Shown: piece after piece, positions 6,321 to 52,261 of the stretch | Layout: the number at the start of each line of letters is the position of its first letter | Position numbering within the stretch: position 1 is the stretch's first letter | DNA from: Octopus vulgaris | Taxonomy: Eukaryota | Assembly (NCBI GenBank): GCA_951406725.2 | Contig: OX597818.1 | Coordinates: forward strand, 96,658,001 to 96,722,000 | Length of the DNA stretch: 64,000 bases | Direction of reading: 5' to 3' | Made by a program: the position numbers and the translations under genes | The notes under the pieces: model-generated | Told to the model about the DNA's origin: nothing | The model's input: the letters and a program-made list of their open reading frames with translations, nothing else | The model's database searches: none

Positions 6321-6423
6321 ATATGGATGGATATATATGTGTGTATAAATATATATATATATGTATATATAAGTATAGGAAAGAATGGAGCTGAACGAAG
6401 ATTTAACAAAATTCCTTTATTTT

Positions 6424-6509
6424 ATTTTCGACATATGTTTCGAAGTCTGCAAAATCCCTAATTCCGAATGAATAAGGAGTCCATTATGCAGCTTTCTCTT
6501 CAGGAAAAT
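6424..6509 (-). ncRNA. type I hammerhead ribozyme with canonical core, within a ~415-bp Penelope-like terminal-repeat fragment (6371-6785)
   Basis: Minus strand: ATTTTC CTGAAGA GAAAGCTGCA-35nt-TGCAGACTTC GAAA CATATGT C GAAAAT. Stem I is 6 bp, the core is CUGANGA/GAAA, stem III is the palindrome ACATATGT, and the cleavage triplet is GUC. Confidence 0.8.
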
Positions 6510-6794
6510 CCAGGAACTTCTTTTGCCAACAAAATGCACAACAAATTTTTAGATGACTGCTCACGAGGAGCCCATAGCGATAATGATAAATAATGTCTAT
6601 TTATAGGGGGTGAAGTCAGATTGGTTTAATGTAGGAGAAACTGGCAGTTAAAGGGTTCAAGGGTTCAATCGAGGTTGGAGAAGGGAGGTAAAGAATATTA
6701 AGTTGAGGGAATGTATTCTGTTTGACTGGTGTTTATATTTGATTTATTTTATGAATGAATGCTCGTACGAGCACTCATTCATAAATATATATAA

Positions 6795-6930
6795 AATAAT
6801 AATAATAATAATAATAATAATAATAATAATAATAATAATAATAATAATAATAATAATAATAATAATAATAATAATAATATTATAATAATAATAATATTAT
6901 AATAATAATAATATTATAATAATAATAATA
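6795..6930. repeat. (TAA)n tract, left flank of the Dong-like element
   Basis: Directly visible. Confidence 0.97.
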
Positions 6931-7114
6931 TCTGTCTAAGAGAAGAGCGCCAGCCTTGACAGCGGCTGGACGTGTTCCTCAGTGCTCTGACAGTTCGGTG
7001 GCTGAAAGCCATAGAAACACTAATATGGGCCAGTTTAGCAACGGGGAAAAATAACTCTCAAAGACTGGAACATCTACAATACCTCGTGAGTATTTGAAAT
7101 TCTCTTCAAAGTGG

Positions 7115-8182
7115 GTTAAGAAATTTACAAATTTACATATCTGCAGCTTTCAAACATACATCCGATCGGCCTTAAAAACTTTAATACCCACAACTGCCTC
7201 TGTAAGCACCCTTTTTTTTCTTCTCTCTAAAAATATCACGCTTTTCTTTTTGTGGACTTGCAAAACCCTAAAACTTTCTATGAAAATCTGACTTTTCTTT
7301 GCTTCCTCCCTGAATATTCAAATATAAATGTAAACATATACTTTTTATTGTAAAAACACACCTGTAAACATATACTCTTTATTGCAAAACACACCTGTTC
7401 CTCTAACTGGACATACAAACATCTCTAGAGGGGTCAACTTCAACCTCCACAATATTACCTTGCACGAAATATACAAACACTTTTTATTGCAATAACACAA
7501 ACGCACATGGAAAAAATAATGATGCTAAGATTCTCTCTGGTCGAACACAGCTTCTCTATTCACAAATAATACAGAATAGCCCTTCAAAATAAGCACGAAA
7601 TATACAAACATTTTTTTATTGCAATAACACAAACGCACATGGAAAAAATAATGATGCTAAGATTCTCTCTGGTCGAACACAGCTTCTCTATTCACAAATA
7701 ATACAGAACAGCCCTTCAAAATAAGTTAAGAAAATTTACAAATTTACATATCTACAGTTTTCAATCATACATTCGACCAGCTTTAAAAACTTTGATACCC
7801 ACAATTGCCTCTGGAAACATCCTTTTTTTTTCTTCTCTCTAAAAACATCACGCTTTTCTTTTTTTTTTCTTTTTATGGACTTACAAAACCCTAAAACTTT
7901 CTATGAAAATCTGACTTTTCTTTGCTTCCTCCCTGAATATTCAAATATAAATGTAAACATATACTTTTTATTGTAAAAACACACCTGTTCTTCTAACTGG
8001 ACATACAAACATCTCTAGAAAAGTCAACTTCAACCTCCACAATATTACCTTACAGGAAATATACAAACACTTTTTATCGCAATAACACAAACGCACGTGG
8101 AAAAAAAAAAAAATGATGATGCTACGATTCTCTCTGGTCGAACACAACTTCTCTATTCACAAACAATACAGAACCGCCCTTC
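7115..8182 (+). repeat. tandem duplication A(7115-7593) a'(7594-7725) A(7726-8182)
   Basis: The ~470-bp unit starting GTTAAGAAATTTACAAATTTACATATCT is repeated. An extra ~132-bp copy of its end (CACGAAATATACAAAC...CCCTTCAAAATAAG) lies between the two units. Confidence 0.9.
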
Positions 8183-8602
8183 CTTAATTTTTTCTTAAGC
8201 CTAATAGTAGTAAACATCTGAACTTTTTTTGACCGATAGGACCGCACCTAAAGAAAGAAAAAAAAAGACAGTCAGCCAGCCAACCACCAAGCCAGCCAAC
8301 GAGACAGACAGACACTACTGTGATGGTGATAATGATAAAAAAAAACAAAAATAACAATAATAAGATACTGCTGTGACTACACATAAAACAATATCATTGA
8401 TGATGATGGTGGTGGTGATGATGATAATGATGATGGTAATGGTGGCGATAATGATGATAGTGATGGTAATGGTGATGATAATAACAATAATAAGCCGACT
8501 ACGGCTGCTATAATGGTACGATTATAATTGTAACGGCAATGATGGCCGTCTCCCCACGAGCCAATCAAAGCTAAAAAATGATAACATTATCGTAGCACCA
8601 AA

Positions 8603-50100: not shown

Positions 50101-50140
50101 TTGTGTGTGTTAGTGGCAGCAATGTGGGGAATTGGTGCAC
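47106..50140 (-). CDS. LINE ORF2 (APE endonuclease + reverse transcriptase), split by one frameshift near 48991-48994
   Basis: APE motifs LNAQG, ILTETHL, GLYRPP, MGDFNLP, ILDLVF, SDH. RT motifs NYRPISLTS, YLDFSKAFDRVDH, GVPQGTVLGPLLF, FADD, RPHLEYC. Confidence 0.92.
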
Positions 50141-51339
50141 TGGGGTAATAGCATAGGATGGTGTTGAGTGATGGCTAGAATGTTTTTGTGTATCTCTTTT
50201 GCCATGTTCAACATGGCTAAAAAAGAATTTTCCTGCTTAGGGAGCAGTTTTTGGCTGGAGGTGTGGTTGCACTGTTGGATAGGGTTGTAGTTTCCACTTT
50301 TGTTGTTGTTGTTTTTGTGTCTTCCTGAAAAGACTGGACCAGCATTACTGCAGCATGGTGTGTTTCTATTTTTATTGTTATTCAGGTTTGTGTGTTGGCT
50401 TGAGGCCCCATTTCTGTTTGTGCGTCGGGTCCCTGGAAGATGAGTGAAGGGACAGTCACTCAGTAGACATGTTCTCTCACGTTGGGAATACCGGCAGATT
50501 TTGGGACTCCGAGTTGTGTGTGTTTTGAATTTCGATTTACTATTTGGTGGTGTTGATGTTATTGTGGGATGCGTGCTTTGGCCTTGGCCAGTAGTGCGTC
50601 TAGTGCCGGGTAGATGCGTGAAGATGCAGTCACTATTTGTGCAGAGTCTCTGGCGCAGTGAATAGCGGCATATTTGGGGATTTCTTGTTTGTGCCGTGGG
50701 GGGCGCATTCTGCTTCCTATGTTTCTTTAAGTTTTTGTTACTGCAGTAGTATTGAGGTGGTGATGTGGGGGAAGAGGGCAGTGGTTTCTTATTTGGTTTT
50801 CTGTTGGTATTTTTGGTGATAGAAGACGATGGTGGCAGCGGTGGTGATGATGATGATGATAATTGTGGTGGTTGCTGTGAGAGCGGTGAAAAGATACTGG
50901 CATTTAGTGAATCGTCTAGTAAGCTAGAGTTGAGGAGTGGCTGTTGTTGTTCTTGTTGCTGTGGCTGTTGTTGTTGTTGTTGTGACTGACCGATGTCAGG
51001 GTCAGCCATTGTGTTGGGAACCAGGAGTGGCTCATTCTGTTGTTGTTGTTGTTGTGGCTGCTGATTTTCTAGCTGTTGTTGTTCTTGAACTGTGAAAATA
51101 TGTAGAAGCTTTTCATAATGGCCTCTTATCAGTTTGAAAGATACTTCGATATGTTTCAACTTGCTACGAATCTGTTTGACGGATCGTGTGTTGACCACTT
51201 GTGATGTTTTTTCGGCAATCTCATTCAAACACAAGACATTTAGATTTTCTGTTTGGGAAAGAGAGAGCCATGTGTTTATTAAAACATCAATTTCGTTATC
51301 AGACCAATTTCGTCTGTTGCAGGCCTGCAAGTTAGTCAT
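50110..51339 (-). CDS. LINE ORF1, 409 aa: Myb/SANT-like N-terminus, polyQ, two CCCH-type fingers
   Basis: Open 409-aa frame overlapping ORF2 by 31 nt. RRNWSDNEIDVLINTW...RSVKQIRSKLK at the N-terminus. C-x8-C-x4-C-x3-H at 50614-50670 and 50440-50496. Confidence 0.8.
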   Translation of the reverse strand: MTNLQACNRRNWSDNEIDVLINTWLSLSQTENLNVLCLNEIAEKTSQVVNTRSVKQIRSKLKHIEVSFKLIRGHYEKLLHIFTVQEQQQLENQQPQQQQQQNEPLLVPNTMADPDIGQSQQQQQQPQQQEQQQPLLNSSLLDDSLNASIFSPLSQQPPQLSSSSSPPLPPSSSITKNTNRKPNKKPLPSSPTSPPQYYCSNKNLKKHRKQNAPPTAQTRNPQICRYSLRQRLCTNSDCIFTHLPGTRRTTGQGQSTHPTITSTPPNSKSKFKTHTTRSPKICRYSQRERTCLLSDCPFTHLPGTRRTNRNGASSQHTNLNNNKNRNTPCCSNAGPVFSGRHKNNNNKSGNYNPIQQCNHTSSQKLLPKQENSFLAMLNMAKEIHKNILAITQHHPMLLPQCTNSPHCCH

Positions 51340-51671
51340 GTTTGTTTTTCTTTTGTTTGTTTTCCTTTTGATTTTTGAAAATATATATATTCTTTCTTGG
51401 GAGTTAAAGAAGTGTATATATATATAAATGTTCTCTCTTAAGGGTGTGAGTTTTTGATTATTTGGTTGTTTGAGGATATTAAAAGAAAAACAGGTGTATA
51501 TATATATAACAATTTGTAGTTAAATGAAAACGTACTTACGGGTTTGTAGGCAAACACGTGGTTACAAATATATATATATTTTTAAGGTCAGTTAGTTTTG
51601 AAGCTGTGTAGCTTGCTACTGACTCGGGAGAGAAACAAATAGACGTCCGTCCAGTTCAACAGTTAATCCAC

Positions 51672-51975
51672 ATATATATATATATATATATATATATATA
51701 TATATATATATACGTATATATATATATATGTATATATATATATATATATGCATGTGCATATACATGTGTATATATATATGTATATATATATATATATGTA
51801 TATATATATATATATGTATATATATATGTATACATATGTATGTACGTATATCTATGTATATATATGTATATATATATATGTATATATATATGTATATATA
51901 TATGCATATATATGTATATGTATCTATATATGTGTGTATATATATATATATATATATATATATATATATATATAA
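51672..51975. repeat. TA-rich compound microsatellite including the right copy of the LINE flank duplication
   Basis: Directly visible. Confidence 0.95.
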
Positions 51976-52070
51976 CGGGAAGGTTTACGAAAATAAACAA
52001 AAGTCGAAGGCAAGTGGAGTACAAACAAACAAATGTATTAGTATGGCGCTCAGGAACAGAAATAGAACAA

Positions 52071-52110
52071 GTCTTTTACGTTTCGAGCCTACGCTCTTCG
52101 ACAGAAAGAT
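52071..52110 (-). ncRNA. hammerhead-like motif (A6U) in a Penelope-like terminal-repeat fragment (~51976-52167)
   Basis: Minus strand: ATCTTT CTGTCGA A GAGC GTAG GCTC GAAA CGT A AAAGAC; stem I is TCTTT/AAAGA. Confidence 0.6.
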
Positions 52111-52261
52111 ACACAGAAAAATAACAAGGAGAGAAAAAATGCGTGTAGGTGCTAACGATCTAGCATGATATATGTGTGTGTGTGTGTGTGTGTGTGTGTG
52201 TGTGTGTGTGTATGTGTGTGTGTTTATATATATATATATATATATATATATATATATATGT

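Follow-up and report, generated by a model that had tools for sequence, protein, structure and literature searches.

Penelope-like elements (PLEs) are known to carry minimal hammerhead motifs in their terminal repeats, marked by a base between positions 9 and 10.1, a G10.1-C11.1 pair and a palindrome at 15.2-16.2; thousands of single motifs have been read as truncated PLEs, with opposite-strand pairs 100-700 bp apart, a U3-A8 variant and low activity in vitro (Cervera & de la Pena 2014, PMC4209133). PLE inserts are characterized by an inverted 5'-truncated copy and by a bias toward (TA)n (Craig et al. 2021, PMC8557442). Other carriers of hammerheads include the schistosome SMalpha and Sjalpha elements, which the citing text in PMC8490949 treats as retroposons resembling short interspersed elements (SINEs) (Ferbeyre et al. 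1998; Laha et al. 2000), the retrozymes of the non-LTR (long terminal repeat) type, which are defined by direct tandem repeats together with circular RNA (Cervera & de la Pena 2020, PMC7229834; Li et al. 2026 preprint), and viroids, for which, as cited in PMC4209133, an extra unpaired nucleotide between A9 and G10.1 is compatible with activity (De la Pena & Flores 2001). Here we analyzed a window of 64,000 nt from Octopus vulgaris (contig OX597818.1, positions 96,658,001 to 96,722,000; G000:C5:96658001-96722000 in our labelling; assembly of 2.8 Gb in 227 contigs), in which a first-pass annotation had listed eight hammerhead sites. Very probably, this window holds at least eight remnants of PLE retrotransposition, comprising 5'-truncated PLE 3' ends that bear hammerheads, one longer PLE copy, a SINE (family B) and a hairpin derivative (family E). 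The sighting of hammerheads is real but largely ordinary, the motif being already known for PLEs, and every main feature that we describe was already described by Cervera & de la Pena (2014).

Six of the eight listed sites (6424, 13377, 17616, 19254, 46733 and 52071) proved to be hammerhead-derived; site 38202 is half a motif only, with CUGANGA absent from both strands, and site 42733 is none. The latter, considered as an antisense hammerhead, was rejected (stem I and the descriptor both fail); its CTGATGA forms a fold-back loop, in antisense orientation to PLE coding sequence. Our type I descriptor comprised, in order, stem I, CUGANGA, 0-1 unpaired base, helix II, 0-1 unpaired base, GAA, a helix III beginning with A and ending with U, then H and the other strand of stem I. 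With a stem I of at least 4 bp, it gave two perfect matches in the window, 6424-6509 (-) and 61421-61463 (+), the second of which was not among the sites listed before, and 13377-13422 (-) became a third match once a 3-bp stem I was permitted. That motifs are denser here than in shuffled sequence was borne out, with 2-3 intact motifs vs. a mean of 0.02 and a maximum of 1 in 100 dinucleotide-preserving shuffles of the window; when one core mismatch was tolerated, there were 6 matches vs. 0.95 in the shuffles. Genome-wide, where each exact-pattern count was compared with a reversed-pattern control, CTGANGA-N{9,24}-CGAAACGTH yielded 15,432 matches vs. 140, and the form with C at core position 4 (U4C, CCGANGA-N{9,24}-CGAAACGTH) 11,926 vs. 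111. One could argue that such matches arise by chance in AT-rich, microsatellite-rich DNA (GC 30-44%, more than 30 arrays by Tandem Repeats Finder), given that two items of the first-pass annotation failed (site 42733 and the inverted repeat at 19130) and that no Rfam match reached the gathering score; however, the shuffle and genome controls refute this explanation, and the motif is conserved in each family and covaries between families, leaving to chance a probability close to nil. Intact cores are present in three of the seven motifs in the window (the D, B and G copies) and the other four are mutated, i.e. most window copies are dead; the relics at 17616, 46733 and 52071 are copies of one family group with 1-2 core mutations each. 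These results also indicate that reading motifs by eye is able to pick such hammerheads out.

The hammerhead sites fall in dispersed repeat families of 39 to more than 2,000 candidate copies each (first-look candidates, to be read as lower bounds). The view that several unrelated families are involved held up, with A (in three subtypes), B, C, D, E and G now distinguished. Families B (13320-13470) and D (6368-6767) have at least 2,486 candidates (95-97% identity) and 2,131 candidates (95-99%), respectively, family A (17597-17773) has at least 1,065 candidates with 76-85% identity, families C (19250-19362) and E (38087-38259) have at least 1,130 and 1,313 candidates, respectively, and G (61385-61560) is an old family of 39 genomic relatives with 68-85% identity and with the motif kept in the aligned copies. 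The CUGANGA and GAAA boxes, in type I order with H17, are found in the consensus or in abundant variants of A, B, C (a subset), D and G. Between families, stem I covaries and still pairs (UGUUU/AAACA, GACAC/GUGUU, GUCU/AGAC, UUUUC/GAAAA and UGGUA/UAUCA), stem II covaries likewise (GAGC/GCUC, GGCUGG/UCAGCC, GGGAUAU/AUAUCCU and AGCU/AGCU), and helix III is palindromic throughout (ACGU, ACAGCUGU as the consensus of family C, ACAUAUGU, AUGCAU, ACGAUCGU and ACAUGU). The unpaired base after A9 is A in families A, B and C, C in family G and U at locus L114, and is missing in family D and in the Rfam-type copies described below. When RNAs of families C and D were cofolded in ViennaRNA, the dimer of minimum free energy adopted the double-hammerhead layout, with predicted energies of -29.1 and -41.0 kcal/mol, respectively, vs. 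-20.8 and -33.2 kcal/mol for two monomers.

The link to PLEs came from the window and from about 295 kb of genome sequence examined beyond it, at sampled loci labelled L001 and so on. Families A and D are the 3' ends of PLEs encoding reverse transcriptase (RT) and GIY-YIG endonuclease (EN), because their units are physically continuous with PLE open reading frames (ORFs) at L073, at L105 and in the window at 42835-43606. At L073, the RT-EN ORF is followed by a CA-rich stretch of ~400 nt, i.e. the untranslated region (UTR), the A unit and (TA)n, and window positions 42835-46890 repeat this order with an RT/GIY-YIG remnant, a CA/CATA block, a hammerhead terminus and (TA)n. The remnant aligns by tblastn with residues 444-718 of a 781-aa PLE protein (E 5e-20) and shares 47-65% identity with the L073 ORFs, its Pfam GIY-YIG score of 17.8 bits being under the cut-off. 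Window segment 42704-46890 is a single 5'-truncated PLE copy, and sites 42733 and 46733 are its two ends. Since the homologous stretch at L073 is only ~400 nt vs. 2.5 kb in the window, the degenerate (CA)n/(CATA)n block at 43900-46450 expanded within the 3'UTR of the element. For family D, locus L105 comprises RT (YRDD) and GIY-YIG ORFs, followed by a UTR of 720 nt that contains the D hammerhead and adjoins (TA)n, and harbors an inverted arm of 1,107 bp with 98.1% identity; the window copy at 6368-6767, whose hammerhead has a predicted cleavage site after C6430, is 98.25% identical to positions 706-1105 of this arm.

A Pfam search for GIY-YIG across the genome returned 5,955 candidates; the 150 that were scored are all above the cut-off, 19 of them lying in the open 781-aa frame with RVT_1 (residues 259-442, 28.9 bits, just missing the cut-off of 29.6) plus, at its C-terminus, a GIY-YIG that passes (residues 685-772, 30.6 bits). 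At L095, the 3'UTR of this 781-aa PLE ends at (TA)n, ~75 nt before which lies UUGAUAA-GGUUC..GAACU-GAAA-CAUGU, a hammerhead of the U3-A8 variant, and L114 represents a fourth PLE terminus with its hammerhead ~140 nt from (TA)n. The association with PLE ORFs elsewhere in the genome is thus seen at L073 (A), L105 (D), L095 and L114, and families C and G are probably PLE 3' ends as well. In 3' regions of this type, the hammerhead lies 60-150 nt from a 3' end that adjoins (TA)n; adjacency to microsatellites had been claimed for nearly all sites and applies to 7 of the 8, a figure to be taken with caution in a window of more than 30 arrays. The first-pass annotation had regarded the sites as short units mobilized by Penelope-like proteins. 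The PLE part of this proposal stands, given the contiguity of A and D with PLE ORFs and the minimal hammerheads of PLE type; however, most of the units are 5'-truncated PLE copies, not discrete solo repeats, and B reads as a SINE. Relatives of the 781-aa ORF in the databases have the same domains; the best of them are only 58% identical and are unnamed or mislabelled metagenome proteins. Several close relatives are filed under bacterial metagenome-assembled genomes of bivalve symbionts (Thiodiazotropha, Solemya symbiont), almost certainly as a result of contamination of these bins with PLEs of the host genome.

Table 1. Hammerhead motifs and PLE-related features in the 64,000-nt window
Feature	Positions	Strand	Details
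Family D copy, PLE 3' end (last 400 nt), 5'-truncated	6368-6767	-	3' end adjoins (TA)n
Intact type I hammerhead, family D	6424-6509	-	AUUUUC-CUGAAGA-[55-nt helix II]-GAA-ACAUAUGU-C-GAAAAU; found by descriptor and by RF00163 over full model 1-45
Inverted copy of first ~33 nt of truncated D copy (snap-back junction)	6766-6798	+	L105 arm 706-737 by BLAST, 90.9%
Family B SINE body, window copy	13320-13470	-	97% identical to body consensus; without head and last ~30 nt
Minimal hammerhead, family B	13377-13422	-	Core intact: CUGAUGA-A-GGCUGG..UCAGCC-GAA-ACGU-U
Family A copy, PLE 3' terminus, 5'-truncated	17597-17773	+	Between (TAGA)n and degenerate (TA)n
Hammerhead relic, family A	17614-17650	+	Core CCUAAGA
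Family C copy	19250-19362	+	(TA)n at either side
Hammerhead relic, family C	19254-19301	+	Core CCGAUGA; helix III palindrome broken in this copy
Family E hairpin element	38087-38259	-	Long arm 38087-38258 (-), short inverted arm 38166-38259; centre in would-be helix II loop
Hammerhead 3' half, family E (site 38202)	within 38087-38259	-	GGCC-GAAA-CUUCGAAGU-C
Fold-back at PLE 5' truncation point	42704-42877	.	Arms ~75 nt, 81% identical (self-BLAST); right arm continues into PLE ORF remnant
PLE ORF remnant, RT C-terminal part and GIY-YIG	42835-43606	+	RT part KPTD..YL..SSHP; GIY-YIG with embedded cysteines
CA/CATA-rich microsatellite-expanded 3'UTR, same PLE copy	43900-46450	+	Homologous to ~400-nt L073 stretch
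3' terminus of 42704-46890 PLE copy	46719-46890	+	Ends at (TA)n
Hammerhead relic, A-type	46732-46768	+	CCGACGA-A-GAGC-UCC-GCUC-AAA-ACGU-C; core CCGACGA plus G12A
A-like PLE terminus	51938-52166	-	Flanked by (CA)n/(TA)n and by (TA)n; shares 72% identity with 46716-46900 over 192 nt
Hammerhead relic, A-like	52072-52109	-	Core CUGUCGA (A6U)
Family G copy	61385-61560	+	Carries intact hammerhead 61421-61463
Intact minimal hammerhead, family G	61421-61463	+	CUGGUA-CUGAAGA-C-AGC..GCU-A-GAA-AUGCAU-C-UAUCAG; descriptor match

Several observations weigh against the interpretation of these sites as PLE remnants with self-cleaving hammerheads. First, the Rfam scan of the entire window at gathering score reported a tRNA alone and no hammerhead: the best window score on Hammerhead_1 (RF00163, gathering score 34 bits) was 31.0 bits, at 6424-6509 (E 2.6e-6), and the motif of family B was not reported by the Rfam hammerhead model even at E up to 10; the E-value list for the whole window was swamped by microsatellite 'miRNA' artefacts. 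Second, linkage to a PLE ORF was seen for A, D and two other PLE families, not for B, C, E and G, and among the sampled A loci only 1 of 29 had an ORF within 1.5 kb. Third, the window and family hammerheads are putative self-cleaving motifs, the U4C core that accounts for 11,926 exact matches is also that of most family C copies, and self-cleavage may not be the function under selection. Outside the window, the genome has 8 matches to RF00163 at or above the gathering threshold. A separate genomic group of PLE-type hammerheads (L001-L030) with the layout GUAC-CUGAAGA-GACC..GGUC-GAAACAUGUGU-U-GUAC reaches the Rfam threshold, some members having an insertion of ~60 nt in helix II, and none of this group lies in the window.

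The U4C variant deserves to be considered on its own. The commonest A-type terminus in the genome, CCGACGAAGAGCTCCGCTCGAAACGTY (CCGACGA-A-GAGC-UCC-GCUC-GAAACGU-Y), has C at core position 4, and its member in the window is the relic at 46732-46768; the intact genomic type of the terminus at 51938-52166 is CTGATGAAGAGCGTAGGCTCGAAACGTA. By classical mutagenesis, C at core position 4 should cripple cleavage. The canonical CUG copies of the U4C family are outnumbered by the C4 form and look like products of CpG-to-TpG decay. Because the crippled core has been kept together with intact helices, these sequences suggest that the fold matters for something besides cleavage.

Family B differs from the PLE termini in its organization. 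It comprises an 84-nt head (present at many loci), an (AAT)n(AAC)n stretch and a body of 184 nt, and its size is roughly 10^4 copies. The hammerhead occupies positions 48-93 of the body and lies ~95 nt from the 3' end. Stem I is 3 bp in the window copy and 5 bp in the consensus, and core, GAAACGU and H are all retained by 23 of 41 sampled copies. The head harbors an A box (TGGCGTAGTGG) and a B box (AGTTCGATTCC) and has a weak match to the Rfam tRNA model (17.9 bits for model positions 8-63, the gathering score being 29); ARAGORN found no tRNA in it. From these features, B reads as a tRNA-derived SINE that carries a minimal hammerhead of PLE type. At the B loci (L032-L060, e.g. L037 1013-1684, L049 1485-1962 and L059 1390-1690), an inverted 5'-to-5' partner was found in ~17 of 30, the second copy being frequently 5'-truncated, and some junctions form a near-perfect palindrome precisely at the 5' end of the SINE; the monomer at L059 has a 13-bp target duplication (ACAGATGAAATAC) and a 13-nt snap-back. 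Identity between the arms (93.1% within pairs vs. 93.2% between loci) is uninformative, because the history of the family is a star-like burst.

How B is inserted bears on what it is. A conventional explanation would have B as an ordinary tRNA SINE that depends on long interspersed elements (LINEs), with a fossil hammerhead-like stretch, and its pairs as products of twin priming or of reinsertion at hot spots. In keeping with this, the head has A and B boxes and a tRNA score, one target duplication of 13 bp was seen, and the shared 3' tail expected of a partner was found in none of the four PLE termini examined. However, we regard this explanation as somewhat unlikely for the following reasons: 1) B has neither poly(A) nor a LINE-type tail, and the layout of its body matches that of PLE termini; 2) twin priming of the LINE type was rejected as the source of the inverted pairs, since each arm of a pair bears the same 3' region, with its hammerhead, and the arrangement is that of PLE insertion, not of L1-style twin priming; 3) the arms meet 5' to 5' in near-perfect palindromes located precisely at the SINE 5' end; and 4) the frequency of inverted partners matches PLE behavior (PMC8557442). 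Family B may be a true SINE parasite of PLEs, inserted by PLE machinery, the signs being its inverted dimers joined precisely at the SINE 5' end and the 13-bp target duplication with its short snap-back, and our search of the literature found no paper describing such a parasite. Joining this to the U4C variant, we put forward, tentatively and as a possibility somewhat short of even, that B is a SINE driven by Pol III that took up a PLE-type 3' module with a minimal hammerhead and is inserted by PLEs, and that selection on the U4C termini keeps the fold or its dimerisation (e.g. for recognition by RT), not self-cleavage. This joint reading would exceed the 2014 description, and, if true, B parasitises PLEs rather than LINEs.

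Two further tRNA-related features were seen in the window. An intact tRNA-Ala(AGC) gene (20335-20407, +, 51.5 bits) lies ~1 kb from the family C copy and is unrelated to the SINE head. A second, different family of tRNA-derived SINEs, recognized via L115 409-729, is present at 28996-29143, 36928-37075, 3116-3243, 39927-40013 and 34800-34851, and no hammerhead was seen in that family.

Four inverted duplications had been tied to the hammerhead elements by the first-pass annotation; those at 6748-6785, 38165-38259 and 42704-42877 do belong to them, and the one at 19130-19163 has no demonstrable family link. The sequence around the latter (19127-19166) is a small near-perfect hairpin, ACAACATATGAGCTCGTATGTTGT, between TA-rich tracts, for which no family relation was found. 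Across families, inverted partners are always in the (-)(+) order, i.e. 5'-to-5': in addition to the B pairs, there were 4 pairs among the 43 matches listed for family C and 10 among the 50 listed for family D, and the canonical motifs on contig C1 form four (-)(+) pairs and no (+)(-) pair. In the window, the inverted segment of the D copy at 6766-6798 is followed by (TA)n and (AAT)n. Based on published PLE work, the GIY-YIG endonuclease would nick microsatellite (TA)n DNA, the 3' region of the RNA would be copied by target-primed reverse transcription, copying would frequently end early, and a second, inverted copy would be made at the 5' junction, either by a template switch or by self-priming; where a transcript contains two copies, two hammerheads would pair via the palindromic helix III and cut out an RNA of unit length.

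It had further been proposed that the ribozyme fold marks the point at which reverse transcription snaps back, i.e. that the helix II hairpin is the site where nascent cDNA folds back and self-primes, with fold-back centres coinciding with the ribozyme. A few centres do fall there: that of family E is located in the helix II loop, two G loci have theirs within helix II (L106) and on the core's 5' edge (L107), and one B partner begins at body position 57, within the core. However, the remaining centres lie at variable truncation points: in family C, they are 25, 60, 60 and 230 nt upstream of the motif, and the corresponding distance is 260 nt for the window D copy, 1.1 kb for L105 (where the arms are 1,107 bp) and ~3.9 kb for the window PLE. 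In family B, junctions coincide with the 5' terminus of the SINE or fall at body positions 14, 16, 25, 112, 122 and 142. Truncated D arms begin at query positions 23, 31, 46, 52, 89, 106 and 139 with no clustering, and the 3 of 7 starts inside the 80-nt motif (42% of the query) equal the chance expectation. Moreover, every E copy examined has the identical fold-back, and because all copies share the same short-arm end, this goes back to one ancestral event rather than to many independent ones. Family E is a hairpin derivative retaining half a hammerhead, and there are too few helix II-centred fold-backs in E and G for an interpretation. Only one B copy (body position 89) and one D arm (2 nt off) among ~19 truncated copies have their 5' ends at the predicted cleavage site, which is at chance level. 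Except in E and G, the proposal was not supported, and we consider helix II very unlikely to be the site of self-priming.

The shape of E and C raises the related idea that both are fold-back elements formed at the DNA level, or are akin to miniature inverted-repeat transposable elements (MITEs), with an incidental resemblance to hammerheads. Both families are hairpin-shaped, all E copies share one fold-back, and E is without CUGANGA; however, in C the minimal hammerhead is complete and its stems are compensated, the 3' end meets (TA)n as in PLE termini, and fold-back centres differ between loci, and the E copies have one long and one short arm instead of matched terminal repeats. We thus hold this idea to be unlikely, and retain C as a probable PLE 3' end and E as a hairpin derivative.

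Another view of the units as a whole is that they are metazoan non-LTR retrozymes, i.e. direct tandem hammerhead repeats processed to small circular RNAs. Like retrozymes, the units are short, AT-rich, non-coding and hammerhead-bearing and coexist with PLEs (PMC7229834; bioRxiv 10.64898/2026.07.22.740005), and a few partial direct tandems exist (L064, L068 and L086). Against this stand the contiguity of A and D with PLE ORFs and the motifs themselves, which are of the minimal PLE type and not canonical type I with loop-loop contacts. The head-to-tail repeats that define retrozymes (150-450 bp, with a hammerhead each) were likewise not found for any hammerhead family in the window, and these three partial tandems were the only ones among ~60 sampled B and A loci, where copies are solitary or inverted. 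Accordingly, we assign little probability to retrozymes and favor PLE remnants as the identity of the units. The window also has tandem duplications at 7462-7725 (132 bp x 2, 97%) and 53632-54136 (275 bp x 1.8, 85%), and the printed consensus of each is without a hammerhead core.

These findings confirm that PLEs in this animal genome of 2.8 Gb are routinely and very abundantly marked by minimal hammerheads, with at least 27,000 near-exact motifs of one helix III type. In practical terms, short 'unclassified' repeats beside (TA)n can be assigned to PLEs through their hammerhead, and many small inverted repeats are explicable as PLE 5' junctions. In addition, the family in which U4C is dominant and the carrier with a tRNA-like head provide cheap experimental handles on the purpose of PLE hammerheads.

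In comparison with known systems, viroid hammerheads, as cited in PMC4209133, differ from those of PLEs in carrier and biology (viroid RNA replication). Retrozymes (PMC7229834) resemble the units described here in being non-autonomous and hammerhead-bearing with a proposed dependence on PLE proteins, and differ in being defined by circular RNA and by direct tandem repeats, of which no array was seen here. As far as PMC8490949 describes them, SMalpha and Sjalpha are the closest precedent for family B, being short, non-coding and high-copy with SINE-like features and a type I hammerhead; in that account SMalpha has a canonical, efficient hammerhead and is often found in tandem or satellite arrays, whereas the motif of B is of the minimal PLE type, an (AAT)n(AAC)n stretch lies inside the element, and most copies are solitary or inverted 5'-to-5'. 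With the canonical EN+ PLEs (PMC8557442), the elements share RT and, C-terminal to it, a GIY-YIG with embedded cysteines; they are likewise heavily truncated at the 5' end, where an inverted 5'-truncated copy adjoins, are inserted at (TA)n and have a hammerhead near the 3' end, and are set apart by 3'UTRs with large internal microsatellite expansions (2.5 kb in the window copy). The closest match is with the hammerheads of PMC4209133, as evidenced by: 1) the type I layout with a short helix I (4-6 bp) and a loopless, palindromic helix III implying action as a dimer; 2) the unpaired base after A9 in A, B, C, G and L114 and the G10.1-C11.1 pair in A, B and D; 3) thousands of dispersed single copies in several consensus families, with opposite-strand pairs a few hundred bp apart; and 4) the U3-A8 variant in the UTR of the 781-aa PLE. 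Unlike the hammerheads of that study, the dominant family here has C4 (~11,900 exact matches), family D combines a helix II of 55 nt with the lack of an unpaired base, and one carrier is a SINE with a tRNA-like head.

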